The notes under the pieces were generated by a model that ran no database searches, was not told the origin of the DNA, and worked only from the letters and a program-made list of their open reading frames with translations. From Stylophora pistillata (Eukaryota), in the NCBI RefSeq assembly GCF_002571385.2, contig NW_019217860.1, forward strand, positions 390,856 to 454,855: a stretch of 64,000 nt of DNA, read 5' to 3'. The position numbers were made by a program, and so were the translations under genes. Each line of letters begins with the position of its first letter. Position 1 is the stretch's first letter. Shown piece after piece: positions 748-54,144 of this stretch.

Positions 748-3062
748 CTAAGTTGCTATATCTTGTTCAACTGGTTCATTGTCTTTAAACTCGTGCTCCT
801 CCCCAGCACGTGTTTCGCCGCCCTGAAACTAAAGAAAAGTAATTTTCAAAGTAGTTAACATTTTGTGTTGTTTACTCACAGCCACAGCACTTAGTGATAA
901 GCTCCAGGTGAGCAAGACTAGTGCCCGCGTGAAATATCCTTGCTTTACTTAAGGTAAGTGGAATAGGAGCTTAAAACACCTTTGAAAATTTGCGTGGTTA
1001 TTATTAATAATGATGTTACTATTGTAATTACGGTGAAGCAGTGGAAATCATTTAGAATTAGCCTAATTTAATCCTTTAATCCCTAAGAGTGATTACCAGC
1101 TAATTTCTCCTATCAGTATCACATCTGAAACAGACATTGAGGTCATGACAAGGAAGTGATCATCAACTAGAGAGTCTCTTGATTTTTAAACAAATTCACT
1201 TAATTAATACCATATGAAAGTTATAGAGAACAGTATGGAGAATATGCATATTGATGTTAGGGTGTAAAAGACTGATGATACATGATTATATAATCTCAAC
1301 CATCCAGCCTCATTTCACAACATTTTCCTGGAACATCTGCAGCATTCTTGATGCCTTCGTGTGGGTATTTTTCAAGCTTAATTTCTCTGGAAATACTTGG
1401 CTATTTAAAGTCACCATTCAGAATATTGAGGGGTAGCATTGGAATATCTGGCAGCTAGATACACATAGGGGCGAAATTCTTGAAACAAAATTGATTTCAA
1501 TGACAAAAACTCACTGTTAAGAGGTCCACGTGCATCTCTCCAATCTCCAAGATATTCTCTTCATCTTCATTCATTAACTTTATTTTAGCTTTCATCATCG
1601 AGGCGTCGCTGACTGGCAAGCTGCAAACGACATTTTCTGCCAGCTTCATATGGTCAACCTTCTTCCTTTCAAGCTGGAAAATAATGCGTGATTGGTTTCA
1701 CACTTTGTTGATTTATTACAAAATTAAACTAATACAATCGACGTTCTTTGTATGAAATTTACCAACCAATGTTCATGCCTTCAGAGCTACTAGACGAACA
1801 GATTTTGATCACAGCTTTAGAGCAACGTTTTTGAAGGAAATTACCGAGATACTAAAAGATAAATTGCGATGATGCACTGTCATTAACGTTTTCATTACAA
1901 GATGTAGCCGTCAACCGATTATTTGGTGGATCTAGATCTGAACTCTCCTGGGTCACTAATACGAGAAGAAAAAAAAGCATAGAAACAAAAAACAAAAAGA
2001 ATTCTGACTGCGAATAATTACCTCCTTCTTGGCGTGAAAGTCCTCCAAGGATAAACACGCAAAGAGTTTTTCCCCTTGCGTTTTCTTCCATCGGAAACTG
2101 TTTGAGTATATCCTCTTTACGTTTTGATCACCTTGGATCTCCTATAAACAGTTAATAATAAATGCAGAGTTGATATGGATGTATATTGTAGTTACAAGAA
2201 CCATCATGTACTATCAACGACTATCACCGAATACCTCAGCTGTCCTGTAGTTTGGAAATGTTGAAATTCGACAAGATAGTTAAACGAGCGAATGATTGTG
2301 AATGATACTTCTTGGGTGAGCAGTTATGCTTAAAACTCAAAGCGAAATTGCAAATGGTAAAATGACTTGGGCAACCGTTAAAAGTTCGGAGAATGTCTCG
2401 ATGATCGATAAGTATTGCCTAGTGACTGTCCGAGCTATATAGCATAAACTGAAGGAGGTGCCTATTTTTAGCGAACGAATGCCAAATATTTTGATCTACT
2501 GTTAAATCGCCATATTGGATTGCCGGGATCGAAGTAAGCCTGGAACGAGTGAAAAAGAAAACGATAGGGTGGGGGTGAAAATGATCGATTTTAAGGGGGT
2601 TGTAGTCGTGTCAGTCTGTTCCAGGCTGTACACAATCTTAACAAACCAATATGGCGGCTTCGACATTCGATGGGAATGACTGATGGATCGGACGAATGGA
2701 AAGTCAAGTTCGTTGCCTAGTTTCCGAACTTGTTGGCCCACTAGTTGCCTGACTCGCTGGCGGACTTGCTTACTAACTAACCAGCTAACTACTTAACAAT
2801 CAAAATGGCCAGCTCGGTGGCAGACTGGTTAGTGGAACCGATAGATTGTCTGACAGGCTGACTGTGCTAAAGTACCCGCTCTCACTTTAAGAACGTCTAA
2901 GCGGCCAGAATCCTCCAAGGCCCTGGTGACGTACATGACTAGTTGGTGTAGTGATCCTGTGCCCCCGTTTGTCGCTGGTCGTACATAACTGAAAATATCC
3001 ACCATGTAATGGTCGTCATCGACGCAAGTTTCTTGGATACGCTCTGGTACGTTATCGGACAT
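748..3062 (-). CDS. X1: divergent stand-alone UPA-like protein, 176 aa; exons 3062-2886, 2141-2022, 1673-1515, 822-748
   Basis: All introns GT-AG, phase 0. Exon 2 (120 nt) and exon 3 (159 nt) have the same lengths as in X2-X4. Spliced: MSDNVPERIQETCVDDDHYMVDIFSYVRP...DVLK|EIQGDQNVKRIYSNSFRWKKTQGEKLFACLSLEDFHAKKE|LERKKVDHMKLAENVVCSLPVSDASMMKAKIKLMNEDEENILEIGEMHVDLLT|GGETRAGEEHEFKDNEPVEQDIAT*. Last exon least certain. Confidence 0.8.
1068..1275. mobile_element. About 200-bp MITE (TTAACCCTTTA-type ends) in X1 intron 3
   Basis: Ends ttaatcctttaatccctaa ... ttagggtgtaaaagactga form degenerate TIRs. Internal sequence resembles an abundant coral MITE (recalled, not searched). Confidence 0.6.
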
Positions 3063-3770
3063 TATATCATAATTCTGCGCACAGGGGTAGGATGTTACTT
3101 CTTTGCTGTAAACTGCAGCATTAATAAAGAAAAAAATTGGATAAAAAAGATCGTAGAATAAATTTGAGGAGAAGCGTATATTTATATATATGGCGTATGC
3201 GTTTCCACGTTGCTTAGATCGTAGGCTTTAGTCTTGTTTTTGTTAACCTCTTGTGCAAACAAGTCATTTGCTTGTGGCAGAATTTATGCTACTGAATGAC
3301 AATTCTCGTCCACGCATTGACTTAAATAACGGCATAAAGATCGATATTACAAAGAATACTTGTGACTCTATTCGCTGAGATGTGTTAAACACGTGTGTTA
3401 GACACGCGTGTTAAACACGAAGTTACATATGTACCTTGATAAGCCTCGTATATGTGTGTAAAGACCGCCTCAGACGAATAGATTAGTTACCTTTGTATGT
3501 GTTCCAAAATCCAAAACGAAATCCCGTCAGCAGTTTTCAATCTGGTGCCAAACAGAAAACTTCTGTCATTATGGGTTAATACTGATAATCTTCCTTTTGT
3601 CACTTCAGTATGAGATGTGCACTCTACTTTGCCTCCTAGATAACCTTTGATCGGGATGGTAAGGGATCAGTCCTTCTTTTAATAGACAAGAAATGCAATG
3701 GACCCCTGCGAAGACTTTCGTCATGGAAAGGTTTTAATATATTCATAGAATACGCCGAAATCACTCAAAT

Positions 3771-5100
3771 GGGGCTTCCCCGAATAAAATGAAAACAAAG
3801 GCAAACATTTTACCTCCTAAAGTATTTTCGCTTTCGGGTCAATGAGTGGGAAAAAAATTAGTATTGTCTCAGAATCCATGCAGTTACATATCTGATATTC
3901 CTATCATAACAACAATTCAAATTGAACAAGATGCTTGTAAATGAATACCTCTAGTGACTCTTACCCCTTATTCGAAACCAAGATGATTCCTTGTTCGATT
4001 CTTTGTTGGCTGCGGTGAGTTATTCTCTTAAGCACCCAAAATTTCGAGCTAATTTGATTTGATATTTTCCGAGCCTCAGTATTAAACGACTGCTCAAATC
4101 CTGCTGCCCTTTTCACGCTAAAAAAAATTTAAGGATATGTTCGCTAGATGAAGACACGGCAAGCGAAATCCCTTACGGCGGTGACCTACTTTGCACTCTG
4201 CGCTCAAGACACAAACGTTTCACTGATGAATTTCTTTCTTTCTTTCCTATGGCAAGGGGGGTTTCCCTTTGCACTTTCGTTTTGAACACTACCAAACTTG
4301 CTTTCACATCAAAATTAAACGATCTTTTCTTTTGGGACGTTTGGGTTCTAAAAAGAGACTATTTTATTTGCTAAGACTGAGTGGTTGCGAAGGTTTTCCT
4401 TTTACTTCCTTTTTAGATTTTCGAATGTCCCGAAGGCTGTTACTTTGACGAAAGAGCCTGTCCTGTAAGAGATTTTGAAAGTGCAACAATAAAAAAAAAA
4501 TGTAAAAAGTGTGGTGCTTCCATCAGCGCTTCTCGATTAGACTTACAGTAATTAATTTAAAAGTGCTCTCTTAAGAGTTTTCTGGAATTCAGATGTTGTG
4601 GCTCTGATAATTATTTCAAGGTTAAAAATGTGCTTCATTGCAATTTTTTTGTTTATCGGGGAAAACCCCGGCCTTTTACTCTTATTTTCGATTTACTCAT
4701 GTAAGACCTGTTTCACAACATGTTCCTTACTTTGGCACTTTTGCAAGACTCGCTATTCGCAGCTCAATATGAAGAAAAAGTGTCAGTAAGAGGAACTATA
4801 ATCTTATGAGAAGTTTAGTTTTACCTTTTGATTATTTTTAAACTTTCGCAGACGCCGACGGTGACGGTTGATGACCTGCTCCTATCATATTCAATGAATC
4901 GGTGGTCTCTGTTTTCATTTGTTCTGAAGACATTTGCCTTTATCATTTAGCTAAATGTAATTCAGAGATCAAATGGACATCGAAAAGGGCTTTGATAAGC
5001 AAACTTGGCAACATTAGATGCTTCTCGAGCTTTGTTTAGGGCGCTAATTTTGGCTAGAATATAAACTTAACCTCTAAAATGTTCATTAGGGGAAAACCCC
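3771..5100. promoter_or_regulatory. Putative bidirectional promoter X1/Z1 with kappaB-like site cluster
   Basis: GGGGCTTCCC 3771-3780, GGGGTTTCCC 4258-4267, GGGGAAAACCCC 4658-4669 and 5089-5100. ISRE-like TTTTCGCTTTC near 3825 and ACTTTCGTTTT near 4273. Confidence 0.6.
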
Positions 5101-5805
5101 TTGTTTTGATTTCTTTCATTTTCATGGTTAAGTTGCATATTGGCGACACGCACCCGACAAAATCCACCCAGTCAGCACGAATCAAGCAGCGCAAAGAGGG
5201 AAAGAGATGTTTGTGATGTTGAAACCATGTAAAACTCAAGAAAAGGCAAAAATCTGGCCCAGCAGCAAGAATGCGTCCAGGTAAGGCAATACGCATGTGT
5301 CAATGAAAGCACAAGTCTACAGTCACTGGATCCCACAAAAATGTATTTTGATGCAAGAATGTATCTTGCAAATAACGAAAATGTTGCATATATTAAAATT
5401 CATCAGTGTATTACCCAGAATTTAAAATAAGCGGCTGTACTTATGGGATAACACATTGAAAATATCATTGAAAATAAAGATTGAGTTATTCCCTTTTCAC
5501 CTTTTCTGAACATATGAAATCATTTCAAATTTTATGAGGAAACTTTTTCTTAGTCAGCCGATCTTTGCAGCAAACACTTTCGATTTTTTTGTTTTGTTTG
5601 TTTTTTTACCTCTGATGTGGTGCAACATGGTTTTTAGTTGTTTTGGTCGTTCGTTCGTTCATTTGTTTAATTGTTTCGTTTTGTTTTATTTTTTAATTCA
5701 GAATGCCGGATGAGCTCCAATTTACTTCAGCACGTTAGTGCGGGTGAATTGTTTGTCAATAGGTTGTCATTTGATGTGGGGACTGTACTGAAGCACCTTT
5801 ACAGA

Positions 5806-5958
5806 CTCATCATCATCATCTTCATTATAACTTCAACTGTCACCATCTCCATCGTTAGCAGTCTCATCATCATCATTGTCATTATCACCTTCATCATCTC
5901 TATCAATATCAGTGCAATCATTATCATCATTATTGTTATTATCGTTATCATTATCATT
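5806..5958. repeat. Degenerate (ATC/ATT)n microsatellite
   Basis: Directly visible; explains the poly-Ile ORF 5671-6000. Confidence 0.9.
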
Positions 5959-5992
5959 AAGCAATCGATCGATTGGTTAGCTCAATTGCCCC

Positions 5993-6330
5993 CGGGTTAG
6001 CTCAATTGGTAGAGCGCCAGACTGTTGTGCGGGAGCTCGAGGGTTTTAGCCCCGGCCGGACCAACAATAACGGTCTTAAAATAACTGAGGGGAATTTGCT
6101 ACCTTTCTATAATAACAAGAAATGGATAGAAATTCTAGTCTTCTCGGATAAGGACGGATAAACCGTAGGCCCCGTCTCCTGCAAGGTTAGGGGTAGGAGA
6201 CGTTAATTTCCCACGCACAAGATTACTGTGTGGTGGATGTCCTCCCCTGGGGTGGGATGGGTGGGTTTACTGGGCCCGCATGTAATTGGCATATATTTAC
6301 ATATAGATTTATCGCTTTACTTGGTCATCT
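5993..6330 (+). mobile_element. tRNA-derived SINE
   Basis: A-box head TTAGCTCAATTGGTAGAGCG and degenerate B-box, then body GGCCGGACCAAC..GGTCTTAAAATAACTGAGG..TTCTCGGATAAGGAC.ATAAACCGTAGGCCC resembling cnidarian SINE2 families. 3' boundary approximate. Confidence 0.7.
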
Positions 6331-6437
6331 GGCTTTTTTAAGTCTAGTTCATTATTCATCTCCTTACCTTGTTTTTATGTCGTTTTTTAAAGGCGTGTAA
6401 CTCGACTGATATGTTATCTTTATCTTTAACAGCGGTG

Positions 6438-8114
6438 ATGGTCAGCGGCCGTTACATAATAAATCAAAATGGGCCCCTTCCTCCACAGCCCATTTTGATC
6501 GAACACTGCTGTTTGATGGTAAAGGGAAACGTATGGGATATCTCTATTAAATGCCGGCCACATTCCAATCAACGCAAGAAAAATGAAAACTGGATAAATA
6601 TCAAAGAAGTGTATCCTGATGCCAAAGTGGAGAGAAAACGTAACGACATCCAGCTAACCTTGCCTTTGCTGAGAGAAAATCTTGAATTGGCAGCCTTTGG
6701 AGTTCCAGGAAAAGATGACCAGAAGCGAATGCAAATGGCGATCTTTGGAAAGGACCCAACAAAAGGCTGCGACTGGAAGATTAGGATTTATCTGATAGAT
6801 GACTCCGAAATGGCGCTCAAGGTAACACATTTACTCATAATCACAATTTTTCTATAGGATTAAAGGTTAAGTTTAAACAAAAAAAAAAAAAAAGAAAAAA
6901 GGAGAGAAACAAAAGGAGTTGAAAATTAAGGTTATTGCCTCGATGATCTTAAATACTTCATCCTCATCCAGAATAAGTTTTTTGAATTCGGCCAGAATCT
7001 GGGTCTCCTAATTTGGTTTGCTCTTTGCTTTGATGAGTTATTTTTTTGTTGTTGTCTGTTTGTTCGGCATGTTGTTTTGTTTACTTGATCTGTTGAGCCT
7101 CTTCAGATGGTTCCTTTTATTCAATTTACAGCAGATTTGTAAGAAAGGAGAAGATTCAGGAATCAAATTGTTGACAACGCTGTCCAGCTTGTTTGTATCC
7201 AACAGTAAACAAGATATTAGCATGAAGTTTATTCACTTGGAAGCGGGATGGCAAATCGTTGGGGACGAAGTGAAAGTAAGCTCAGGCTACTCTATAGGGA
7301 GTGAGTGCGTTCTTAGATAGTATGACCTTAAGCGATAATTGACACTAGAAATGAGAGTTCGTTTTGATGCTAAAACACACATTAAACCAGTAGATAGCAC
7401 CTGAAAACGCAGGCATTTAAGGATTTTGATTCCCAGGTTCTAAACTTTTATGCAATCCTTTTGCCTAGACGATAGCATCAAGAGATGCCTGGAATTCTCC
7501 AGAAAATGCGACAGATTTTCCTTACTGTGATTTTGTTGTGAGACACGCTGATATGACTAAGCAGCAGTTCTTCTGTAGAATAAGAGCAACACACGAAAAC
7601 GACACGGCTGATAACGAGGTTGTGGCTTTTTTCCAAAAGGTAAATAAACTCATTATAACTTTTACCTTATTCATGTTATACCTCTACGGTTATATCAATG
7701 CTGCCGAAGTTACAAGACGCTTTACAACGAGGAAACCAAAGTAGAAATTACTCATCATTAAAGAAGAATTAATAAACACGACTAAAACATTGATTTCAAA
7801 AGATGTGGTTAAGCTACTAACAGTTTACTTTAAGGTGAAAACAAGTGGTTGGGGAAACAATTCAAATCGAAAACAAAACAAAACAAAAACAAAACAAAGA
7901 CAAAACAAAGTAAAACAAGAAAAAACAAGAGAAAAAGAGAGGAAGAAAAATTGATCAAGAACTCGTTTTAAAACGACAGAGGCTTGATATCAAGATAGTT
8001 GATGTATCAATTTCGTTTCCCTATTTCATTCCACAGGACAATGATAGCAAGATCAACAAACCAACTGAAAAGAAACACAAGAAAACTTTTCAGATGAACT
8101 GTTCGAAGGGTTAG
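6438..8114 (+). CDS. Z1 (type A): partial ZU5 + UNC5-type UPA protein, about 258 aa; exons 6438-6821, 7132-7275, 7469-7639, 8037-8114; possible extra first exon 5703-5733 (MPDELQFTSA, phase 1 into acceptor at 6433)
   Basis: GT-AG phase-0 introns give a continuous ORF. PILIEHCC..W resembles the ZU5 C-terminal part. KRMQMAIFG..DWKIRIYLIDDSEMALK..LL..L..W..DAW..YCDF..FFCRI resembles the UNC5 UPA domain (KRLQLAVF..LRVYCLEDTPVALK..IW..HCTF..LTCKI). Confidence 0.82.
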
Positions 8115-9916
8115 GCATATTTGTGCTTTTCAATGATTAGACTAAATTATGCTTCCTAGGTCAAATTTAGCTATGTTTCCCTCAATCAAATACACTCAAT
8201 GTCTTTTAGATGTCAATAGTGGATACGGAGAGACGAGGAAAATGCTCATTCAAATTTAACAATTCTCACCGAACTTTACGTGACCTGTGCTTATAAGAAA
8301 GATGAATACTACAATATTTCTTCTGTCTAAAAGACAAGGGTTGTTTGGCTGAAATCTCCCAGCAGTTAACTCGTGAGATGAAATTTGGATCATTTGGTTT
8401 TTTTCTAACGACAACAGGATGGGCCACGCTTATTCAAGAGGGTTCGTAACTCAGAAGTAAACATTATCCAGCTTTTAAAACCTTTGGTGGAGAATGTTCG
8501 ATCAAATTGAATAATCAATGCATTTAATCATTCACTAATCCATGATTTAATAATTTCATCAGAATCCAATGCTGCTGGATGACGTCCCGAAATGGATTGT
8601 CAGTGTTCAACTTCAGTACCAAGCCTTGCAGCTTTGTATAAGCGTTATGATTTTCGCCGTCCACTATAGACACGCTAAGGCTAATCAGAAGTCTCTAAAA
8701 ATAATTAAAAAAAGCCTCGAATCGAATGGCAACAGGGACGGATAGCGTTAAATTGATCTTTACTTAGTTGGAAACATAGCTAAAAAGACTAGAGTGTAAC
8801 AAGTCAAATTGATATGCAGGGGCCGAATTTTTTTGCCACTTGGACCAAGGTAAATGTCACTTTTCAATCTTTCAACACTTTAAGCAGTCAATTAAAAGGA
8901 AAATATGTCCGGCTGTTGGAGGTTTTCTTGTTTGATCCTTGTCTGATGACTCTTTTCTATATTTTTTTTATTCCTTTTCCTTTCTGTTTATATATATATA
9001 TATATTTAATTCACTCCTTCATCTTATCTTTACAAATTATTTATCTTAATTTTTTATTTGGAAGAAGTTTTATTTTTTTCTTCCATGTTTGAGTACTGCA
9101 TGCATGGTGCACACATTTCATTTTAAAAATTCGAGAGGAGCTGAACCAAGAAGATCATGATGGCGTTAAAAAAGCAGCGTGACACCCCTTCGCGACTTGA
9201 GCAATATCAGATTGAAAATTTAGCAAATAATCGAAAACTTTGCCCTTGTAACCATACGACCACATATATTGATTCGACTAATTGCCTTCAAGAAAGATCA
9301 TCCCAAACATCTATACATTCAAGTTCACTCCCAAACCCCCTCCCCCCCCCAAAAAAAAAGGGAAAGAAAAAGAAAAATGAGAAATAAATGAAACTTGATC
9401 TCGGCATTACTATCTTTATTTTACCATAGCGTACACATAGCATTAAAACTGTGCGGAAAATATTCTCGTTCTAATGCCTTACTAAAAACTGTTCACATGA
9501 TATAGACTACATCAAAGAGATATTACTTACATGTGATCAAAGCTGTTCGCTATAATACTATGTTAAGTTGCTGTATTTGTAGTCATTTTTCGCTAATCTA
9601 AAGAGCGTGGCTAAACAGTACACGTTGCACACTATGCACTATTATAGAGACTTATAACGATGTTTACATATTTACAGAGCGGATAAGAGTAGATCGGACG
9701 ATTTAGACGTATTCGGTCGCCGTCTGTGCCTTCAACATAGGGCTCCGTACTTGCATCAACCTTAAAACGTTGCGGGCTCAGGACCCTGGATAGACCTAAG
9801 CCAGGCGGCTACCTCAGGTGACTAATGTAGTGCATCCAACCGCAGCCTTTGGCGCGAGGCTCGACATCGGCGTCAAACGCCTCTCCGCCTCACCAATAGA
9901 ATCCCTTTCCTTTTCT

Positions 9917-12250
9917 TTACTCCGAGGTGTGGTCATGCTCAACCGCTGGTTTCGTCTCTTCCAAGTGAGTCTAGCGGGGAAAATGCAAGTAATCTGATTA
10001 CTCTTTTATCGATGAAACGTTTCATCGTACTAATATGGTAAAGATGTTAAACCTATGAAACCAACATACAGCAGCTAAATCACTGTCTTTTAATCCATGA
10101 ACATTTGATGTGATCGCGATCCTTTCAGCGAATATTTCAGCCTATCGCCTTACAGATTATGCATAAATCGATTGCATAGTCTAAAATATTTTTTTAGCCA
10201 AGCTTTCTCATTCACCTTCACTAATCAGTTTATCAAAGAAAGGTGTTTCTTAAGCATCTTCACTTATTCGTGACGTCGTTTGTTGCCCCAGCTCATTTTT
10301 GTCATTGTAAATAATTACAACGATACCTATTTCAGTTAATTGGTTAATTGATCATTATCCCATAGATCATTTATTTTGTTATTTTTTCGATCAATTTTTG
10401 AATTAGTCTTACACCACTTACCGAAGGAAGTTTCACCTCAAAGTGCTCTGTTTCAAGCAGACTCTCATTCCGTTCGTTCGTCAGCAATGCAGCGATCTTC
10501 AGAGAAGTTAAATTACCAAGCGGAAGAGTAAAACTGAGTTTCTCTGGTAGCTTGAACTGGTCAATCTTTGTTCTCTCCAACTGCGTCAATGCATGCAATA
10601 GCATTAAAAAATATTCAGCGAAAACAAAATTATCCTTCAAGCCACCAATCACACTCGATCGTCGAGGGGGCTCTCAAGGGCAATAATTAGATGACCGCTG
10701 ACTAGAGGACAACTACAAAACAATTTCAATCTCAAACCTTTTAAAGGTGGGATATAGCCTCAATTGAAACTCTATCTCGACAAAAAAACTTGATTATGTG
10801 CAGGTCCTATTATTCAATCTTACTGCATGAAATTATTTTTCTTCAAAATTTTTTTTTTGGCTTTTTATTTTTTAACTAGTACTTTAGCCGAGAAATCACA
10901 TGTTTCAGTTGCCATCTAACTCCCTTCCTGTTACGTTGGAATGTACTTCAAAGAAATCAGTTATTACCTTTTTAACTGCTTGAAAATCTCCCATTTTCAA
11001 ATGGGCAATGATTGACGTGGCTCCTCTCTCTCTTAAACAGAGTCGATCAGTGTATGCCTTGATCAGGCCAAGTCGAGTTTGTTCCTCCTTAAAATATTAC
11101 AACAATACCTCATTTTTTATTCACTCACACACTCATGATGAGTCATTTAAGTCCCAGATGTGACTTAAATTTAAATTTTCCTCAAACTGTTGCTACTTCA
11201 TACAGTAATCATGTGATGACAATCAAGAAATGCATCAGTACAAGGGTGTTTGCCTTGATTAACCCAACAGAACCCAACTAAGCTACATGGAATTATAGAA
11301 AAGCCGGATTGGGAAATTGCTCCTCAGGTGTAAAGTGATATAAAAAGTTAAACGCATTTTCCACAATGTTTTCTCCCAGTCACTATCGCTCTCTAAAAAA
11401 ACAAAAATTCTTATCTCATTCCGAAAGGTCGTGGCAGTAAAGCTTAAAATTCAAATGCTGATTAACTGAGAGNNNNNNNNNNNNNNNNNNNNNNNNNNNN
11501 NNNNNNNNNNNNNNNNNNNNNNNNNNNNNNNNNNNNNNNNNNNNNNNNNNNNNNNNNNNNNNNNNNNNNNNNNNNNNNNNNNNNNNNNNNNNNNNNNNNN
11601 NNNNNNNNNNNNNNNNNNNNNNNNNNNNNNNNNNNNNNNNNNNNNNNNNNNNNNNNNNNNNNNNNNNNNNNNNTACCCCACCCCCTGTAAGTGCTTTATT
11701 CGGTTTCTTACAGAACATTTCATCTTCGCAACCGATGTGGTCTGCTGAAGTTTCCATTTGGTTAAAAATTGATCAAGAGGTTCTTTAGATATTTGGAGAG
11801 AAGTGACCCATGATCCAACATCTCTCCTGGAAGGAAAGCATCACAGAACGTTATGTTTTACCACAATTGGCAGAAAATTCGCGATCTGATTGGCCAATTT
11901 GCCGTTGTCGATAAGGGTACAGATAACGCTGCTCGCAAAGTGTCAGCCACTGAAAGAATCGTTTCATTTGACGTCTATATCGTGGTAAAAGCCAAATTGA
12001 CTGTGGCTTAGCGTGGTCTGTTCTCTTATCGACAACGATATTCTTCATTACATTTCCTAAGAGATACCTGTAGAAAACTTTTTCTCTGCCGGCCTCCATC
12101 TTTGGTCATATAGAGGAAAAGCTGCTTGCGAAGCTTAGCGTTGTCATGCTGTCCCGGTTGTACAAGGCTGTACATATCTATGATATAACAATCGTCGCAG
12201 CTCTCACCCAAGCATGCTCGTTGTCTCACCAGCGGCACGTCATCAGACAT
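9917..12250 (-). CDS. X2: stand-alone UPA-like protein, 171 aa; exons 12250-12068, 11087-10968, 10580-10422, 9970-9917
   Basis: GT-AG phase-0 introns. MSDDVPLVRQRACLGESCDDCYIIDMYSLVQPG...SFLQ|EEQTRLGLIKAYTDRLCLRERGATSIIAHLKMGDFQAVKK|LERTKIDQFKLPEKLSFTLPLGNLTSLKIAALLTNERNESLLETEHFEVKLPS|THLEETKPAVEHDHTSE*. The 54-nt last exon is conserved in X3 and X4. Confidence 0.87.
11473..11673. other. Assembly gap (201 N) in X2 intron 1
   Basis: Run of N. Confidence 1.
11850..12052. repeat. Interspersed repeat/MITE remnant in intron 1 of X2, shared with X3 (about 27035-27235) and absent from X4
   Basis: Internal inverted motifs cgttgtcgataag/cttatcgacaacg and ttttaccac/gtggtaaaa. Confidence 0.55.
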
Positions 12251-12994
12251 CTTTCTGTTAGAAGAGGGAAGAAAACATATTCAGATAAGCGAAAGTGCCG
12301 AGCTAAGTAGGTAAACAGCTTAGTTTGTGCCTAATTGAAAGACTGAATTAATCGTGTGCTATTCTTGCCGATATTGCGCACCCTTAGTCAGCCATGTTGG
12401 TTTAGTCGACTGAGGAGGCCTGGGAATGAGTGATAGGAAGTAAATTATGTGTTGCGAGGGGGTAGGGGAGGGAGACAAAAATTCCGTCTCCTTTTCCTCC
12501 CAAGTTATCCCCGTATGTTCCCTTCACTGTTTTTTTTTTTTTTTTGTCCTTTTAAAGATGGCGCACGTCCTGTGGCTACCTACAATACAGGCTAAAGGGT
12601 AATATCTCTCTGTTTGGAACATAAACAAGCTGCGAGATAAGAATAACACCCTCCGATAGAGCTTGAAAGATCAGCCCGGTGAAACCACAAATCGCTATAT
12701 GCCTGAGATGAACTTGATAAAGAATAACATCACTAACGTGATATCAACAATTTTCGAATCTCATCGTAAGCAATTGGTTTAGATAGGATGGACCAACTGA
12801 TCAACAGATTCACTGAACTTACACGCCCTCGCGATGATTTGGTTTCTTCTTGGTCTTTTCCAATTTCTCTGGCTCACAGTTTTGGTATCTCGGCAGTTAA
12901 CACGCTCACTGAATTGTCGAGACGAGTTCCTTTTCTTTGCGTTATTTATTTGTTTTTTTTTTTATCGGTAGCTTTAGCTAGATGGGTCAAGATA

Positions 12995-39169: not shown

Positions 39170-39215
39170 AAATAATAATAATAATAATAATTATAATAAT
39201 AATAATAATAATAAT
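39170..39215. repeat. (AAT)n microsatellite
   Basis: Directly visible. Confidence 0.9.
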
Positions 39216-42760: not shown

Positions 42761-42927
42761 AACCATTTTGAGAGATTATTCTTAACCTATTGGAGGAGTT
42801 ATGATACAACCAGAAGTAAATGTTTCTCTTCTGTATTCGTGCTTTTTTAACAAATCGCAATTTCTCGTTAAAAAAGGAACAATTTAAGTTCCATCCAAAT
42901 TGGGGATCCTGAGAGACTTCAGTTCTA

Positions 42928-44442
42928 GTGGAGAGAAAACGCAATGACGTTCAGGTAACCTTGCCTGTGCTAAGAAAAAATTTGAAGTGGCAGCCTTTGG
43001 AGTTACAGGAAAAGATGACTAGAAGCGAATGCAAGGCTTTGACTAGAAGATTAGGATTTAGCTGATAGATGACACCGAAATGGCACTCAAGGAAACACAC
43101 TCCTAGTCACAATTTTTTTTCTAGGCTTAAATGTTAAGTTAAAAAGAGGAAGAAAGAAAAAAAAAGGGAGAGAAAGAAAAGAAGAAAAGGAAGGATATTA
43201 CCTTAATGACCCTAAATATTTCATCCTCAGATTAATCTTTTAAATTCGGCCAGCATTTCTGTCTCATTTCTGTCTCATTTCTGTCTCCTAATTGAGTTTG
43301 CTCACAGTTGTTCTAATAAATTAGTTTATTGTTGCTGTTTTTTGCATGTTTGACTGACTTGTTTGTTTGTATGTTGGTTTGTTTACTTGATCTGTTAAGC
43401 CTCTTCACATTTTTCCTTTTATTCAATTTGCAGCGGATTTGTAAGGAAGGAGAAGATTCAGGAATCAAATTGTTAACAACACTTTCCAGCTTATTTGTAC
43501 CCAACAGTAAACAAGATATCAGCATAGAATTTATTGACTTGGAAGCGGGTTGGCAAATCGCTGGGGATAAAGTGGACGTAAGATACTCAATAGGGAGTGA
43601 GTGTGTTCTTGGATAGTGTGACTATCAGCGATAATTGAACCTATAGCTAGAAATGATAGTTCATTTTGATGTTAAAACACACATATTACCCGCAAATAGC
43701 GCGTGACACTGCAATCATTTAAGGGCTCTGATTCCCAGATCCTGAACTTTCATACAATACTCTTCCTTAGACGACAGTATCAAGAGATGCCTGGAATTCT
43801 CAAGAAAATACGACGGGTTTTCCTTGGTGTGATTTTGTTGTGAGTCACGTTGATACAACCAAGTAGCAGTTCTTCTTTAGAATAAGAGCAGTACACGGAA
43901 ACGACAGCGCTGGTAACGAGGTAGTGGCCTTTGTTCAGCAGGTAAATATTATCATCATAATCTTTATTTTTTTCGTTTTAAATCTTCATGAGTATCTTAA
44001 TGTAATCGTATTTTAGAGAATTCACAAAGACGAAGCAAAACTGAAATTACCATACGATGAAAGCAAAAGATGAATTAATAAATGGGCTTCATTAAGGGAA
44101 GTTAAGCTACCTATTACTGTAGTTTACGAGTGGAGGAAAGCAACTTGTTTGGAAGGACAGTGTTTAAAACAAAACGAAACAAAAAATTAAAAACAAAAAA
44201 ACAACACAGCAAAACAAAAACAAAGCGTAAAAAACAGAGGAAGAAAATTAATTAATAATTAGTTCTGTTGATAAACGTTTGCTAACATCATGAAAAGTGA
44301 TGAGTCAATCCTCCTTTTTTCTATTCTACAGAACAGCGATACCAAGATCAACAACCCACCTGAAAAGAAAATCAAGAACACTCATCAGACAAACTGTTCG
44401 AAAGATAAAACAATATTTGTCTCCTTTTACCTGTATAATTAA
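42928..44442 (+). pseudogene. psiZ6: 5'-truncated type A (Z1-like) ZU5-UPA paralog
   Basis: Starts mid-exon (VERKRNDVQVTLP). Has a frameshift, TAG at 43019-43021 and a donor mutated GT>GA at about 43092. Exon 43434-43577 is open, exon 43771-43941 has an in-frame TAG at 43864, last exon starts at 44332. Confidence 0.88.
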
Positions 44443-46016: not shown

Positions 46017-48114
46017 CTACTCAGGGGTGTGGCCATGCTCCACTGGTTGTCTCGTCTCGTTCAGATGAGTCTGCTGAAGAAAAGTTAGGAAATTTATCAT
46101 TATTCATCGATCGATAAGACACGTAATCTTGTTGCGATGTCAAGATAGATACCAGAGTTCAAATACAGTTTCTTGTTGGCATTGCTTTGTTTAGCTTATT
46201 TATTAGCTCCTTTCCCAGCAAAATATGTTTCAAATTTATGTTGTTGTTTGAGCATATTCAGAGCGCCTTTCATTTAATTCCAGTGATCAGTTTGTCGCGG
46301 GAAGCCGCTTTTCTCGTCGAATTACCTCTTGTCATTCTTACAACACCCCAGGTCATTTGTGTTATACGTAGTAGGTAACACTATGCCACAAAAAGATTGA
46401 AGTCTGTACTTGATTACTGATTAATTACTTATATATAGATTTAGTATAATTTCAGAGCTGAGCAAAGAGTTTCCAGCAGTCTGATTGGTCGAGCGGTTCC
46501 TTATATGACGCTATATAAACCGCTCCACGCGGTTGATATAAAATGTTAAAATAAAATGTTAATAAATGTTACTAAAATGTTGTGATTTTAGAAATTTCTC
46601 TGAAACAATTATTCGCCTCAGGTTCGGTGAATATCGTCGAATAATCCCCGAGACGAGGTCGAGGGGATAATTCGACAATATTCACCGAAGCTGAGGCGAA
46701 TAACTGTTAAATATATATATTATCATTTTATTCTTGTTTTTGAAAGCCACATTACTCACCGAAGGTATTTTCACCTCCAACAGCTCTGTTTCGAGGAGAA
46801 GGTCGTTCCTCTCATTTGTCAGTTTTACACCGACCTTCAGAGAGGTTACGTTACCAAACGGAAGGGTGAAAGTTAACTTCTCTGGCAGTGTAAACTGGTC
46901 TATCTTTGTTCTTTCAATCTGAGTGAACATATGAAAAAACAAGTGAAAGTCAGATAAAGCACTATTCTCTAACTACAGCCAAGCTCTTTCAATGGATCAC
47001 CCATAAAGTGAACCAGTATTAATCGCAAAAACTGTATGATAGAATACAGTCTCCACTGAAACTCTAATCTTACAAAAGATTATTTTGTACATAGATGCAT
47101 ATAACTTTTAATTTTTTGCGCCTAAATTCAAACCTCGAAATTGATTCTTCTCCATAGTTTTCCGCAGAGTAAGTTCGTGTCTAAGTTGGGAGGCTAACTC
47201 CCTTCCATGTTAGTGGTAACTGACCCCCAGTCATATGTGGAATTTAGACTTTTGTGTTTATTTGGTTCTTACCTGTTTAACTGCTCCAAAATCACCCGTT
47301 TTCAACTCGGCTATTATCATCTGCGCTTCCTTTTCTTTCAAACAGAATCTGTCGATGTGAACCCTCGTCATACCAAGTTGAGATTGCTCCTCCTGAAAAC
47401 AAAACCACGACATCACTAACTTGTTATTTCTTCCTCGAGCTCAGATGTGACTTCAATTTAGAGCAAGTGACGAGAATTAATAATTGTCTCAGGAGAAGAA
47501 CGGTTATTTTTATGTAACGCTAAATTTTCCAAACTCATTCACAAATAATATTGAAATAGCCAGATGGGAGAATAATTTTTCTGGTCTGAGAACATTATTG
47601 GGCTGTTCATTCATTTTCTCTCTTCAAAAAAAAAAAACAAAACAAAACAGAAGCAAAGACAAAAAAAACAAAACAAAACTGCCAAACACACGAAAACTCG
47701 CAACTGCTCCTTCACTTGTGGTGATAAAGTTGGATTTGAAATCAGTTTAAAGATGGAAGGATATCAAGTGTTCTAAGATTTCTCAAAGAGGATGTCTTCT
47801 CACATCAAAGTTATGTCTGGCTAAAGTATTTGGTTTAAAACGGTCGAAAAGTTATTTAAAGTTAGAGAGAAGTGACTTGTAGCCACCATTTCTTCTGGAA
47901 CTACAATAACAGCACAGAACATACTTTTAACAAATACCTGTAAGTAAGCTTTTCTACTAAAGCCTCCATCTTTGGTTAGGTAGAGCCAAAGCTGCTTGCG
48001 TAGCTCACTTTGGCTTTGTTGCCCTGGTTGTACGAGGCTGTATGCATCCACGATGTAGTCATACCCACAACCCAAGCATACTTGTTTTGTTGCGACCCCA
48101 ACGTCGTCAGGCAT
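46017..48114 (-). CDS. X4: stand-alone UPA-like protein, 169 aa; exons 48114-47938, 47392-47273, 46918-46760, 46070-46017
   Basis: GT-AG phase-0 introns. MPDDVGVATKQVCLGCGYDYIVDAYSLVQPG...AYLQ|EEQSQLGMTRVHIDRFCLKEKEAQMIIAELKTGDFGAVKQ|IERTKIDQFTLPEKLTFTLPFGNVTSLKVGVKLTNERNDLLLETELLEVKIPS|THLNETRQPVEHGHTPE*. Confidence 0.87.
46440..46712. mobile_element. Hairpin-ended MITE in X4 intron 3
   Basis: Near-perfect palindrome 46604-46708 (AACAATTATTCGCCTCAGGTTCGGTGAATAT..ATATTCACCGAAGCTGAGGCGAATAACTGTT). Absent from X2 and X3. Left boundary approximate. Confidence 0.65.
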
Positions 48115-48741
48115 TTTTCTGCTAGAGGAGGGACGGATACACATTAATTCACAAAAACCGTAGACGCTTTTTTTAATAGGGCAGAGTTAAGAGTGTGTAC
48201 CGCTAATTTTGTGCCGATTAAATGAAACAATTGTTAAGTATTTGTTCTAATAATGTGCACCCCTCAGTAAGCCACGTTGGATCACTTGACCGAGGAAGCC
48301 TGGACTGAATGCAAGTAAGGAAACTTGGATGTGATGTATCCCGAGGGGGGAAGGGGAAGATGAAAATTGTTATGTTACGCTTCAACTCGCAGTGTTTTTT
48401 AGATTAACTTGATAAAGGCTCACCATTAGCGTGATATCAACTATCTTCGAATGTTATCCAAAGCAAATTTAGATAGAGTGGATCGACTGATCAACAGATC
48501 CACTGAACTTACGCGTCCTCGCGATGCGTTGGTTTCGTCTCGATCTTTTCTGATTTCGCTGGCTCACAGTTTTGGTATCTCGGTAGTTTACACGCTCACT
48601 TTAGTGTCGAGATAAGCTAGCAATACCTTAGTCTTTTCTCAGATAAATGACGCGAATGGATGAGCAAGGAGAGCTTCTCCATAAACTTCAAGGCTTCGCC
48701 ACAATTACAGTGGTTTCATTTCAGTTTCTGTCATGTTGCTT

Positions 48742-51235
48742 GGGGATTCCCCTAAAACTGCCCTTTGCTCTCACAAAGATGCCTTATATTATTTTCCATC
48801 TATTTCTATGGCATTCCTGTCCTTTTCGTTGCGTTTCTGTTTATTGTTTATGTGATCTTTGAAGTGTTTTTAGTCGAATGGATCACGAAAGGGGTTTGCC
48901 CTTTATATTTTGATAACACTGCACTTTCGATTTATTTTCTGGTAAAGTGAAACCAGAAGAAATACGTTTAGACGAGTACAAAGCAAAAACTTGATGAATT
49001 TTTTCGTCTCTTGTTGAAATGAATCGTGAAAGTCGCGTCCTGAACTTTCGTGAACAACATTTTCAAATGGCAATATTTTGTCAAAACAGCGTGAAGGTTA
49101 AATACGCATTATCGATTTCATTAAAACCCTTTCAAATGACAAACCGAATCTTCTGCTCACGCGATATTTTAGTTTGTTTATGACGATAGTACAACCGGCC
49201 TTTTTCATTTCTGCATTTTCACTCCATTTGACGATTTCTAGACGGCAAATGCACCAAACGAAATCAGAGGTAGTGCGCTACGGTAGAACTGTAATACTCG
49301 CAGGCGGAAGAACAAGGGAAATAATAATCAGTGGGTTACGTATGATAGATTAAGTACGTTAGAGTGTAAATAATCACCTGTCACTACAGAGGGTCATTCT
49401 CTAATCACTGAAAGTGATGATCCCTAGAGTAAGAAACCCTAATAAAAATATTGCGACAAAGGATGTTGAATGATCGATTGACCGTATTAGCCTTACACTT
49501 TCTTTTGCTGAGATAGTTCTTTGCTATTCTGATGAGCTGACAGATATTATATAAGACTCCTCCTCTCTCAGCCGAGGCACAAATGATCGGAATACGATTG
49601 AAGTCGCATGATTTTATGCTAAGGCTTAGTCTCCACATGCCTTTTGTGTTTTAGGGGAATCCCCTTGAGTTCCACCTAGTTGATTTTCACAGAAGTCACG
49701 CATAAAAACATCATATTTTACTCAGAAATTCATGAACTGGCAGAAAATAGCTAAATTTTCTTGATAAAAATCCCCCGACTAAGAAACACTTCTATTCCAT
49801 CGTTTACAACCGTATTCTTTTAATGTTTCTCGTGCGACACAGAAAGGGGTTTTCCCTTTTATTTTGTTGATTACGCAGCACTTTCGACTTCCGGTTCAAT
49901 AAGTTGTAATCAAGCGATTGAGTTCGACAATTCAAAACACGAAAACTCGTCATGCCACCACTTCGTCCCTTGCCCTGAAATATCATGCAGAGAATTAAAC
50001 TCTCCAATTGTGCTCTTAAAAGAAATAAAAAGGGCAAAACACTAGAAAAAAGTCTTCTTTGGTTTACGACCGAGCTTTCAGAGCTATTTAAATTGCGTGA
50101 TTGAATGAAATACTCTTTGTGTGTTTGAAATAAAATCCCTTTGTGATGCGAAGCAACACATCGGCTCAGTTCTGACATTAGAAGAAAGAGACTATTTGAT
50201 GGACAATATGGCGGCCGGCATCGACATAAATCAGTTAAAACGAATACAAACTAACTTGATCAATATTTAACCGGGTTGTTAACTAAGGCTGGGCTTTTAA
50301 ACAACGTCAGAGGGAACCAAAGAACAAGAATACTCCTAAATAAATTCGCCTATTTCCATAAAGAAACTACCACTTACCCAAAGGAGTTGTCCTTCAAAAC
50401 TTTTAAAATAAGCCTAGATCTCTGTCGATCAACTTCAACTGAGTGTTGCAATTCTCTTCGTATCTCTTCGATTCTCTTCCTTATCTTCACAACTTTCAGA
50501 GTGGACGAATCGTTTTGAAAAGATAGACAGCCTATGAGAAATTTTAACAGAGCAAGTTTTTCTTTATTGCCTTACCGCCTTACCAAACATGTGTTTGATG
50601 TTTTTCTTTTTTAAAAATCACGTGACAGCTTATTCTCTCGTACGATGCTTTTCTAATCAAGGTCATTCAAGGACAGCTTTTGTTCAAAGTAAGGGAAATG
50701 AAGTTTCGTTTTCTAAAATTGACTACCATTCTCAATTATTTCCTTTTTTCTTTTACCAGATCTCGTGAGCGGGTAACAACATAAATGAGGAAATCGAAAG
50801 TTTATCCACTTTGCAGCTCAGGGAATTTCCCAATAGATTTGCATAACAGACAGAGATCAAAATTAATATCCGCCGAAAGTGCTTGATAAGCACATCAATG
50901 TTCGGAAGGGAAATCCCTTTAAAAACAGCAGATGAAACAATTCTAGGTCTTTTTTAAAATTTTGTTGAAATACAAATTTATTCCAGGTTTAAACTTTAAA
51001 TATAATATTTCCTTATAGCGTCAGTGATCCAGTACCTATGTTGGGCTGTCATTTGTTTCAATCTTGAACGCAGCAAAATAGAAATGTCTGTTGATTCAAC
51101 AGAATTTCAATTGAAACCGAAAACCAAGAAGTGTCTAAACAAGCAACTGTTGTATTGTTTGGTATCTTTGGTGGCAACCAAAGGACAGCTGCGTACAATG
51201 TGTGGAATGCCACCTGAAACCAAGGGAAAAACCCC
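48742..51235. promoter_or_regulatory. Putative bidirectional promoter X4/Z4 with kappaB-like site cluster
   Basis: GGGGATTCCCC 48742-48752, GGGGTTTGCCC 48891-48901, GGGGAATCCCC 49654-49664, GGGGTTTTCCC 49846-49856, GGGAATTTCCC 50821-50831, GGGAAATCCC 50908-50917, GGGAAAAACCCC 51224-51235. Confidence 0.7.
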
Positions 51236-52167
51236 TTTTCATTTTCGGTTATTTGAAAATGCTAATATCAAGTGTTCCGTCCAAGCGCCTTTGCTATATT
51301 AGATTCTGATCTAACAATAGGTACCTGTTCAAGCGAAACTGAATTACACCGTCCTGTTGTTAACCAATGCTTACATCATCATCCGTTGGTAAATATTTAA
51401 GAGGGAGCGCGGTGTCAAATCGTTGCAGTGCCTAAAGAGGGCAGACGAATCTAGCAACTCACTGCCACTCTGCGGAGTTAAAACAAAGTCGTTCTCTATG
51501 GAAAATGGTGAGATTAAACTTCTTTTTATTGTTTATTTTATGGGATCACAACTTATATGAGGAAAAATTGGATATAAAGCAACTTTGTTCGTGGAAAAAA
51601 AAAATCTAAAATTATGTTTTCTGAGTGCATTTATAATTTTCCAACGGCATTTGATCATAAGTCTTGATGAAAACTGAAAGTAAAAAACCGAGAATATGAC
51701 AGCGTGTCAGGTATGCAAAAACTCTCTCAGAATACTAGGAGAGACCGGATGTACAACTCAGAGGTAAACAAACTTGAAGGCACGTAGTCCGCCAAAAAAT
51801 TACCTCATGCCACAGCTTTACTTTACTCAATATTTCAACTAGCTGAAAGGATGAAATATTTTAAGCGCTCTAATTGTCGGAGATGTTGGAAGAAAGAATT
51901 AGATTTAAAAGAAAATAGTTGATAAGCTAATTTCTACCTAAACTGTCGTGTTGGCGGATTAGAAATATCGAACGGAAGTGACCTCGTCCAAGGTTCAATT
52001 AAGCAAGCCTCAAGAGTTTTTACGGCCTCAAAGTAAGTGCGTGAGTTCAGGAACGAAGATAAGATAAAATAAAAATAATGGAATAGAGTCCCACATTGAA
52101 TATATATAATTCTTATAACATTTTGGTTTTACTAGAATCAGCAAAATATGAGGTTCAGAAACCGTTC

Positions 52168-54144
52168 ATGTGCCAAGTCAGTGACAAATACAAAGCCGTC
52201 AAAAGCAACACTGCTCCTCCTGCCGTTGTAATCGAGCACAGCTGTTTGGTAGCGCGTGGACACGACTGGAAATTTGTTGTCAAATGTCGAACACTATCAA
52301 GTCACCAAGAGAGAAATACTACAAACTCGTGCGGTTGGAGAGAAGTCACCGATGTTTTTCCAGATGCCAGGGTAGAACAGAAACATAACGACATTGTTGT
52401 GACCTTTCCTCAACTGAAGGAGGACATTGAAATTGCAGCTTTTGGAATTCCAGGAACAGAAGACCAGAAACGAATGAAAATGGCAATCTTTGGAGAGAAG
52501 CCGACTCAAGGAAGGGACTGGAAATTAAAGGTTTATCTCATAGATGACTCGACTATAGCTTTTAAGGTAATACACATGGTACTTACACTTAAAACATCCC
52601 TAGACTTCAGCTTGAGGCCGAAATCTGAGTCCAATTTTCTTTATTACAACAAACTCAACCTCCACGGTGCCCCCTTCGCTCTTGAAATATAGAGAAGTTG
52701 TGGTTTGCGATCGCCAGGGAAACCGTGCCGGATTAAACACGTTTTTTTGAAGGCTGAGGAATTAGTTTCAGTAACAATTCCTGGTTGCAATGGCTGATGC
52801 CACGAGACTACTAAAGGGCTATTGTCTTCATTTTCGAAACAAAATATTGCAAGTTATCTAATGAGTTCTTTCTTTCCATCAAACAGAACGTCTGCGACAA
52901 AGAGGAGAGTTTTGGAAACAACTTGTTAACAACCCTTGCTGGTTTATTTGTGTCAAACAGTAACGAAGATATCAGAATTGAAATCAACCCCATTGAAACT
53001 GGATGGAAAGTCAAAGGAAACAAAGTCCAGGTATACACTTAGTTCGTTTTATAAGGCTAATCTGCACATTGAGGACCTAAGGGGGAGCTCTACTCTTGTG
53101 GAGAAAGAATCATCTGGTTTTGGTCTCAGAATGAGGCTCAGTTCCTCTCCCTGGTCATCAATTACCTTGATCAGATGTGGAGGTGCAAACCCTCTTTTTC
53201 CTTGGCCTCAGTTGAGATTGAACCTCGTAGAACTCATAAGGCGAGTAATCTCTGTATCGTTCCCCTACAGCTAGGACCCTCCAGTTAACTTTTTTTATAT
53301 CGTTCGATTTACAGGGGATTAAAGCAAAAGATGCCTGGCACTCACTTGAACATGATTCTACAGGCTTTCCTCACTGCCAATTTAACATCGAGCACGTCGG
53401 CAAATCGAAGCAAGCATTCTTTTGTGGAATAACAGCATCGCACGGAAGAGATCAGGCTAACACAGAACTAGTGGCATATTTTGAACAGGTAGGTTTACGA
53501 TATGGAACTTTGTATGTATTTGTGACGCTGGAGACGAAGGTTTTAAAAGAGAGAGGGTCAGGCAATAGGAGCGATGAGTGTTGGGAGCTTGAACCCTCCG
53601 ATATACTGTCTAATTCATTATTACTGAATAAAGGTTTCCTTTCGGTCATACCCTTGTCATCTAATACGGTTACAAATTATAAAAACAGATACCAGTCCAT
53701 GAAATATTTAGCTGAATAGGATGTGAAAAAATACACGTTTAGATAACCGTTTAAAAGGAACCTTTATCAACTACGTCACTAAAACAACACAGATTGGGTA
53801 GAGCTCGAAACTATTTTGCAATGACCGAGTAAAGATTATGTCAAAGCTTTGGATGGGAAAAGGAAAAATTGTTTTGTGAAATGGAGATTTCCAAGAAACT
53901 GGAAAGTATGTATTAAGGCATGCATACTTATTCATTATTTTGTATCGTACAGGAGAGAAGCAGAGGAGAACTCAACCAACCATCTGAAACGCTTCAGACA
54001 CTGAACACCACCACCCCCTATGTGAAAAATGGTAACACACTTTGTTCCTGTTCTTTTCAATATAAAAACAGCAACATCGCCAACAGCATTGGGTACAAGG
54101 ACATAAAGAGAACCTCCACTAGCAATCGAGTTCTGTCTGATTAA
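52168..54144 (+). CDS. Z4 (type B): partial ZU5 + UNC5-type UPA protein, about 302 aa; exons 52168-52566, 52887-53030, 53315-53488, 53953-54144
   Basis: All GT-AG phase-0 introns and an open frame; exon 3 has one extra codon relative to Z2 and Z3. Confidence 0.87.

Follow-up and report, generated by a model that had tools for sequence, protein, structure and literature searches.

Tandem head-to-head pairs of a predicted truncated ZU5-UPA gene and a small orphan gene, with kappaB-rich spacers, in the stony coral Stylophora pistillata

Why would a coral genome keep the same two small genes head to head, several times in a row, across spacers rich in kappaB-type sites? This question is raised by a window of 64,000 nucleotides in Stylophora pistillata (contig C77:390856-454855, G+C 37%), which is the whole stretch of DNA analyzed here. 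The window contains four head-to-head pairs, each made up of a minus-strand gene, X, and a plus-strand gene, Z. An original prediction, made from the nucleotide sequence alone, had described four divergent X/Z pairs with intact spliced open reading frames, and 8 of the 8 spliced X and Z frames are indeed open. The explanation that we favor, to which we give nearly but not quite an even chance, is that X and Z form a tandemly amplified divergent gene pair of stony corals, in which Z, a truncated ZU5-UPA protein, and X, a small protein, share a kappaB-rich promoter and would have an adaptor or decoy role. The genes, their spacers, and the promoter of the fourth unit are as follows, with types A and B defined further below.

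748-3062, minus strand: X1 (type B), coding exons 3062-2886, ~2081-2022, 1673-1515, and 822-748, located with tblastn/blastp
3063-5270, no strand: spacer 1, kappaB-type sites at 3771, 4257, 4660, and 5091
5271-8582, plus strand: Z1 (type B, 268 residues), exons 5271-5280, 6433-6821, 7132-7275, 7469-7639, 8037-8109, and 8563-8582
9917-12250, minus strand: X2 (171 residues), coding exons 12250-12068, 11087-10968, 10580-10422, and 9970-9917
12251-15146, no strand: spacer 2, kappaB-type sites at 13668, 13857, and 14559, and a motif like the interferon-stimulated response element (ISRE) at 14463-14474
15147-18679, plus strand: Z2 (type A), exons 15147-15156, 15717-16147, 16474-16617, 16891-17061, 17524-17602, a duplicated exon E, and 18609-18679
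21518-27433, minus strand: X3 (~170 residues), coding exons 27433-27251, 26487-26368, 25973-25815, and 21568-21518
27434-35129, no strand: spacer 3, kappaB-type sites at 33304, 34467, and 34555, an ISRE-like motif at 34354-34365, and a transposable-element insertion
35130-38320, plus strand: Z3 (type A, 320 residues), exons 35130-35139, 35691-36121, 36448-36591, 36867-37037, 37474-37552, 37928-37993, and 38259-38320
46017-50782, minus strand: X4 (170 residues), coding exons 48114-47938, 47392-47273, 46918-46760, and 46073-46017
50783-51433, no strand: bidirectional promoter shared by X4 and Z4, kappaB-type sites at 50821 and 50908, a TATA-like box, and an octamer at 50837
51434-54804, plus strand: Z4 (type A, 321 residues), exons to 51507, 52136-52566, 52887-53030, 53315-53488, 53953-54031, 54412-54477, and 54743-54804

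The structure of Z was resolved with RNA from two contig sets and two raw-read sets mapped on 48050-54049, which covers the unit-4 spacer and Z4; the runs contain 31-39% of the words of 46500-54500. Z4 is expressed very strongly, reaching a depth of ~1000 from only 2-6% of each raw run. The ends of RNA molecules place its transcription start at 51434-51444, and the first exon finishes with a start codon at 51498 plus seven bases (51498-51507), continuing in frame into exon A. Hundreds of reads each support the joints 51507 to 52136, 52566 to 52887, 53030 to 53315, and 53488 to 53953, and at 54031 a further 438 and 944 reads run on into sequence matching 54412 onward. The exon that the original prediction took to be the last is therefore internal and its stop at 54144 intronic, and the mapped start and ATG mean that the protein begins 14 residues before the Met chosen there and that there is no upstream ZU5 exon. 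The predicted Z models were thus wrong at both ends, since the ATG lies in an upstream exon and Z2-Z4 splice on to two further exons.

In Z4 these last two exons (54412-54477 and 54743-54804) were placed by homology to Z3 and to RefSeq protein P0058, a 320-residue sequence identical to the spliced Z3 translation. Leaving aside the acceptor of the short X1 middle exon, whose position is approximate, the splice sites of X and Z are canonical except for the donor after Z2 exon C, at 17062, which is GC and not GT; the Z2 frame is open throughout. GenBank models P0005 (Z4) and P0059 (Z2) end in intron read-through, in P0059 through this GC donor, and the names under which the Z genes appear at NCBI are "netrin receptor UNC5C" and "UNC5C-like." Z1 is similar to P0009, a database protein with which it shares 90% identity in exon A. 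Minor alternative acceptors in Z4 (52564-52959 and 53027-53361) draw 5-17 reads versus ~1000 at the main joints, and reads that carry the start of exon C from Z2 or Z3 cross-map to Z4, which hints that those copies are expressed. Exon E of Z2 is doubled (18037-18099 and ~18260-18338), a local 150-bp duplication (17991-18376) having given two alternative copies of the exon for the hydrophobic segment.

What kind of protein is Z? Homology searches used single exons or the database proteins P0001, P0005, and P0058, and joined exons served only for frame checks, trees, and the ratio of nonsynonymous to synonymous divergence (dN/dS). Z3 (P0058) matches Pfam UPA (PF17217) over residues 114-236 at E 6.3e-16 and 58.7 bits (cut-off 27), and the same family is found in 19 of 31 Z family members, single exons giving weak matches only. 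In a PDB profile search, the UPA region of UNC5B aligns to the Z profile at E 4e-7. No Pfam ZU5 match was found in single exons, in P0058, or in the 31 family members. The AlphaFold model of Z, built on a 31-row alignment, has a predicted local distance difference test (pLDDT) score of 81, rising above 90 over most of residues 10-255, and Foldseek matches it to UNC5b (3g5b) at E 9e-15. By VIA, model residues 14-250 superpose on residues 597-828 of the 3g5b chain with a Z score of 18.0 and a root-mean-square deviation (rmsd) of 2.9 Å over 218 residues at 22% identity; ankyrin-B ZU5-ZU5-UPA with its death domain (DD) scores 10.5-11.4 and the FIIND of rat NLRP1 10.2-11.1. The ESM Atlas neighbors of Z are ZU5, UPA, and FIIND clusters. 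Since the alignment starts at UNC5b residue 597, ~55 residues into the crystallized ZU5, Z lacks the first ~55 residues of that domain, and as modeled it is the C-terminal two thirds of a ZU5 packed on a full UPA, as in the UNC5 supramodule.

The half-ZU5/UPA description of Z in the original prediction is therefore upheld by the Pfam match, the UNC5b fit, the mapped transcription start, and the 320-residue RefSeq protein. The products also lack a death domain, as had been claimed: RNA-supported and RefSeq models end at 320 residues, no Death domain occurs among the Pfam families matched in the 31 members, and the Z exons do not belong to longer death-domain genes. All 53 relatives of exon A recovered in an exhaustive search are at most 553 residues long, and those with names come from Stylophora, Pocillopora, Desmophyllum, and Montipora (protein P0065).

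Rat UNC5b is the best structural match of Z and its UPA region is also detectable by sequence, but Z differs from UNC5 receptors in having no signal peptide, Ig/thrombospondin (TSP1) ectodomain, transmembrane segment before the ZU5, or death domain. Its sole hydrophobic segment is at the C-terminus, and only the 14 added residues precede the Met of the original prediction. As a protein of 268-320 residues, Z is not a netrin receptor. The ankyrin ZU5-ZU5-UPA-DD structures (4d8o, 6m3q) have the same ZU5-UPA packing, but Z lacks the ankyrin repeats, the spectrin-binding first ZU5, and the death domain, and superposes at an rmsd of ~5 Å with 9% identity. The FIIND of NLRP1 and CARD8, PIDD1, and UNC5CL share the ZU5-UPA fold as well; the links to innate immunity and to NF-kappaB or caspases are theirs, while Z has no CARD or death-domain effector and carries A-F-G-x-P-G at its ZU5-UPA junction. 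This junction is nearly invariant across the Z family (alignments A2 and A4) and has no H-F-S or S-F-S motif, the equivalent position being taken from the domain boundary at ~113; without that nucleophile, autoproteolysis of Z is not expected.

The C-terminus of Z3 consists of ~25 polar residues after the UPA, a ~15-residue hydrophobic run, K-S-T-R-L-K, and a 26-residue Cys-containing tail, and AlphaFold places a low-confidence helix at 274-291. Hydrophobic C-termini are also present in Z4, in the P. verrucosa protein, and in several other family members. A hydrophobic run followed by basic residues 26 residues from the end recalls tail-anchored proteins, although the run is short and in Z4 contains Pro and His. 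This tail was missed by the original prediction and would imply membrane tethering of type-A Z; the C-terminal hydrophobic helix and the basic residues would probably tether Z2-Z4 to a membrane.

A Tctex-1 identity for the N-terminal domain of Z (exon A, 52087-52689) was considered and rejected. The Pfam match is marginal (E 0.018), and exon A matches the tandem Tctex-1 protein P0056 at E 8e-4 in the exhaustive search. Since the Z model superposes on the ZU5 of UNC5b, this resemblance is probably a chance strand pattern, and the Tctex matches of the Z profile in the PDB result from the inclusion of P0056 in alignment A2; it was left out of A4.

An obvious next question is how X and Z have come to be repeated together. 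Self-comparison of the window shows tandem units at ~9.2-20.7, 20.8-39.8, and 46.0-56.2 kb that share 73-85% DNA identity, a strongly diverged X1/Z1 unit at 0.7-8.6 kb, and partial unit copies at 39.8-44.9 and 57.6-62.6 kb. As originally predicted, the pairing persists in the diverged unit, which has the same arrangement and exon plan as the others, including the 10-nt ATG-bearing first coding exon part. Six-frame comparison of unit 1 with the rest retains three plus-strand blocks, corresponding to Z exons A-C, and two minus-strand blocks belonging to X. No further conserved block lies between or upstream of these in the comparison of unit 1 with units 2-4, where the short X1 middle exon also went undetected, and this restriction to X exons and Z exons A-C argues against a hidden upstream ZU5 exon.

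The "four-fold" repeat of the original prediction is right for the pairs in the window but undercounts Z, which also occurs there as fragments and as four further genes elsewhere on the contig. All eight Z genes of this genome lie on C77 between 321 and 484 kb. Those beyond the window (loci L005-L012, at 321.7, 339.8/344.1, 378.7/381.8, and 482.8 kb) comprise two more X/Z pairs and two Z genes without a detectable X, and 6 of the 8 Z genes have an X partner upstream on the opposite strand. The linkage also extends to two other genera, Pocillopora and Desmophyllum, with head-to-head X and Z in P. verrucosa (one pair), P. meandrina (two, one per type), and D. pertusum (one). X and Z trees split into the same types A and B with Shimodaira-Hasegawa-like approximate likelihood ratio test (SH-aLRT) support of 86-100. 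Type A contains units 2-4 and Pocillopora A, and type B contains unit 1, the two further local pairs, and Pocillopora B. This congruence indicates that the pair was duplicated as a unit before the Stylophora/Pocillopora split. Synonymous divergence (dS) between type A and type B Z is saturated at 1.5-1.9, and dN/dS is 0.18-0.26 between the types and ~0.5 among Z2-Z4.

Within type A, the Stylophora Z genes cluster together; X4 instead groups with Pocillopora X. The intron between exons A and B is 99.7% identical in Z2 and Z3 (16148-16473 versus 36122-36447) and ~90% identical to that of Z4, and the neighboring exons differ more than this intron does. The intron identity, which has the look of a recent conversion tract, and the clustering of Z2-Z4 in the tree suggest gene conversion among Z copies.

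These data could be read as passive linkage, in which X and Z are functionally unrelated and remain adjacent through a bidirectional promoter that is hard to split and through segmental duplications of 10-18 kb. Units 2-4 are a single tandem segmental duplication by their DNA identity, two Z genes stand without a detectable X upstream, and X4 and Z4 differ in expression several-hundred-fold or more. Prediction of an X-Z complex from Z4 (1-245) and X4 (28-197) gave no support, with a score of 0.00 and the alignments unused, so that it counts neither for nor against binding. Passive linkage is harder to reconcile with a pairing that has survived saturated synonymous divergence between type A and type B Z as well as the split between Pocilloporidae and Desmophyllum, and with pair types that are congruent in both trees. 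We consider it a real possibility, though an unlikely one. X/Z does resemble known bidirectional promoter pairs in its long-lasting linkage and in divergent starts less than 1 kb apart, the outermost transcribed bases of X4 and Z4 in unit 4 being separated by 651 bp. Unlike the usual pairs, it has been amplified in tandem at least six times, it sets an orphan X beside a ZU5-UPA Z, and one of its sides yields two to three orders of magnitude more output than the other.

If the pair is more than a passive neighborhood, its shared spacers may say how it is controlled. The kappaB-type motif GGGRNNYYCC has 37 strand matches in the window, where 4.5 were expected and the highest count among 100 shuffles was 12. 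Of its 18 distinct sites, the four spacers (16.2 kb) have 15 and the remaining 47 kb have 3, a ~15-fold higher density in the spacers, and G+C is equal in spacers and in the rest of the window. Two hundred position-permuted, composition-matched control motifs averaged 0.78 spacer sites, with a maximum of 6. Spacer 1 has no DNA similarity to spacers 2-4 yet carries four kappaB-type sites, which therefore represent an independent retention. Three such sites are present in each of three Pocillopora spacers, and the two local pairs beyond the window have one or two. The kappaB-like cluster that the original prediction saw in every spacer is thus borne out, and it is conserved in Pocillopora.

The 800 bp before the Z start codon were aligned for units 2-4 and P. 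meandrina (L003). Two kappaB sites align across the genera in this region, together with the ISRE-like motif GAAAACGAAACT, an octamer that alone is not significantly enriched, and a TATA-like box ~30 bp before the mapped Z4 start. The consensus ISRE-type motif GAAAAYGAAACT stands at an equal position in units 2-4 and in the P. meandrina block. A second block, GAAACCGAAAACC, which resembles sites for interferon regulatory factors (IRF), adjoins a kappaB site along with the octamer, and jointly they resemble an interferon-type enhancer. The kappaB sites of unit 4 are separated by 40-130 bp from the outermost base of the X4 transcript and by ~530-615 bp from the start of Z4, and the ISRE-like motif (50702-50713) lies just inside the X4 5' exon. 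With clustered consensus kappaB sites near a start and conserved in relatives, the spacers have the appearance of NF-kappaB target promoters.

The GGGRNNYYCC sites might instead serve another factor or none, with the pair being a housekeeping or developmental unit. Consistent with this, Z4 is already extremely abundant in unstimulated libraries, and D. pertusum keeps the pair without canonical spacer sites. However, the enrichment is specific to this motif (15 sites versus a permuted mean of 0.78), three Pocillopora spacers and spacer 1, which is non-homologous, have kept the sites, and two of them align across genera beside the ISRE-like motif. Cnidarian NF-kappaB proteins bind canonical kappaB sites, which also counts against this alternative, and we regard it as unlikely.

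X2, X3, and X4 each have four coding exons, all in phase 0 and with conserved junctions. The limits that the original prediction gave for X2 (9917-12250) were exact; a match to the X4 5' exon lies upstream of X2 at 14126-14200. X1 exons were found by comparison with X2-X4 and with genes resembling X1 in P. meandrina and in this genome, and its donors are canonical, the limits of the short middle exon being approximate (~2081-2022). In X4 a 5' untranslated exon from 50378 to ~50782 is spliced to 48121/48118, and the X4 splice joints occur in 4 of 4 RNA runs at a depth of just 1-4, with variable 5' exons. The transcript-derived protein P0001 (197 residues), whose contig L001 contains a complete 197-codon frame, is 97% identical to X4 and maps to five exons. 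The upstream ATG of this frame reads TTG at 50451 in the present assembly, so X4 translation begins at the same Met as in the annotated orthologs of two Pocillopora species, which have 162-165 residues. Through this ATG/TTG polymorphism at 50451, X4 gains or loses 27 residues at its N-terminus.

X was found here only in stony corals, and the identity to the D. pertusum protein is 35-47%. Pfam gave no family for X at E up to 10, nor for single X exons, the ESM Atlas no usable neighbor, and a PDB profile search no relative, only Troponin T appearing at E 0.1. An AlphaFold model from a 4-row alignment has a pLDDT of 40 and contains predicted helices; it is too poor for a judgment of fold.

The original prediction had taken X to be a free-standing UPA domain that pairs with the half-ZU5/UPA Z as a heteromeric scaffold or decoy. 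The conserved pairing would agree with this, as would one weak hhalign alignment that lays the N-terminal hairpin of X on the first two UPA strands of Z (E 0.39, probability 0.15%). This alignment is lost with a 23-row X profile (probability 0.06%), and a "UPA-only" identity for X is not sustained: Pfam finds no UPA match at E up to 10, the hhalign probability stays below 0.2%, there is no PDB relative, and the poor model contains predicted helices. X and Z RNA levels are also very unequal. Such a heteromer therefore seems very unlikely to us. That X is a non-coding divergent promoter transcript with a reading frame by chance, as its very low RNA abundance and variable 5' exons might suggest, is almost certainly wrong, given a dN/dS of 0.25-0.29 over 170 codons with dS up to 1.0, phase-0 exons with conserved junctions, a recognizable D. 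pertusum protein, and protein models in both Pocillopora genome annotations. Judged by this dN/dS, X is a protein-coding gene under purifying selection.

How might such a pair work? In the reading that we favor, an amplified X/Z pair under a kappaB-rich promoter, Rel/NF-kappaB and perhaps also IRF factors would drive both genes. Since the kappaB sites are nearer the X start than the Z start, X may be inducible and Z constitutive. Z, as a cytosolic protein, would act as a membrane-tethered adaptor or decoy engaging the death-fold partners of full ZU5-UPA-DD proteins, and X would be a regulator of Z made in far smaller amounts. A constitutive Z next to a scarce and perhaps inducible X would be in keeping with the unequal RNA levels.

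Several observations weigh against this account. In 4 of 4 runs Z4 RNA exceeds X4 RNA several-hundred-fold by raw reads and more than thousand-fold by contig depth, so the shared promoter does not give similar output on its two sides, and this inequality also argues against a stoichiometric two-chain X-Z scaffold at rest. We infer NF-kappaB control and co-induction of X and Z from motifs, and canonical kappaB sites are absent from the spacer of D. pertusum. Two of the C77 Z genes show no detectable X or kappaB site upstream. The hydrophobic segment that would anchor Z is only ~15 residues long, includes Pro and His in Z4, and is missing from type-B Z1.

A bolder version makes X/Z an NF-kappaB/IRF-driven two-component immune module specific to stony corals that gates death-domain or caspase signaling, with an abundant, membrane-tethered Z that has no death-fold effector of its own and is switched by a scarce, inducible X. 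We think this quite unlikely. If true, the module would do in trans what intramolecular ZU5-UPA-DD autoinhibition does in UNC5, and it would likewise be a counterpart of NLRP1's two-chain FIIND.

Death-fold and innate-immune genes are greatly expanded in corals, for which few direct NF-kappaB targets are defined. ZU5-UPA modules are not known to have a role except in proteins of the UNC5, ankyrin, PIDD, and FIIND kinds. Against this background, the X/Z pairs would be candidate immune or stress genes, nominated by the kappaB-type sites of their promoter. Immune activation in corals could be followed with a reporter built on the unit-4 promoter, which has mapped starts and conserved sites of kappaB and ISRE type, and the partners of Z, which is very abundant and has no death domain, could show how a ZU5-UPA module signals without the usual effector. 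X offers a conserved orphan partner gene for study. In transcriptome studies the label "netrin receptor UNC5C" misleads, and the C-termini of two GenBank models derive from introns. We found no description of the X/Z family or of such a paired cassette in the literature; "netrin receptor UNC5C" is an entry in coral expression lists that cannot be linked to the Z family (PMC8590396, PMC7579821).

The remaining features concern insertions, assembly gaps, and degraded copies. A 3.8 kb insert has lengthened the last X3 intron, and the ~800 bp inverted repeat that flanks it (22111-22890 / 24206-25015) is 89% identical; this is probably a foldback or terminal-inverted-repeat element. Runs of N occur at 11473-11673 and 29839-30399, and neither touches a coding exon. 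The first lies inside the first coding intron of X2, between exons that are both in phase 0, and its flanks are collinear with continuous unit-3 sequence (26872/26884). The second sits in a 4.2 kb unit-3 insertion (27553-31795) that is missing from unit 2. An open frame running out of this gap (30401-31174, plus strand) has at least 148 genomic matches, scored out of 2636 candidates and many of them 98-100% identical, and this copy number identifies the insertion as a high-copy transposable element; several copies lie in head-to-head pairs. Pfam has no family for this frame, whose C-terminal motif we take to resemble the GIY-YIG nuclease of Penelope-like elements, and the other large open frames in the window had no Pfam match. 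Two stretches contain remnants of Z.

41287-44440, plus strand: degraded Z copies, a type-A fragment with exons B-C only (41453-42221) followed by a type-B-like copy
59958-60571, plus strand: isolated copy of the Z 3' end (last-exon region), from self-comparison

In the type-B-like copy, exon A (42928-43100) is frame-shifted and exon C contains a stop. A duplicated 1.5 kb segment (39.8-41.3 and 57.6-59.1 kb) that lies ahead of the Z fragments may be what is left of a spacer. Of the three kappaB-type sites located elsewhere than in the spacers, two, at 40292 and 58368, occupy homologous positions in this segment.

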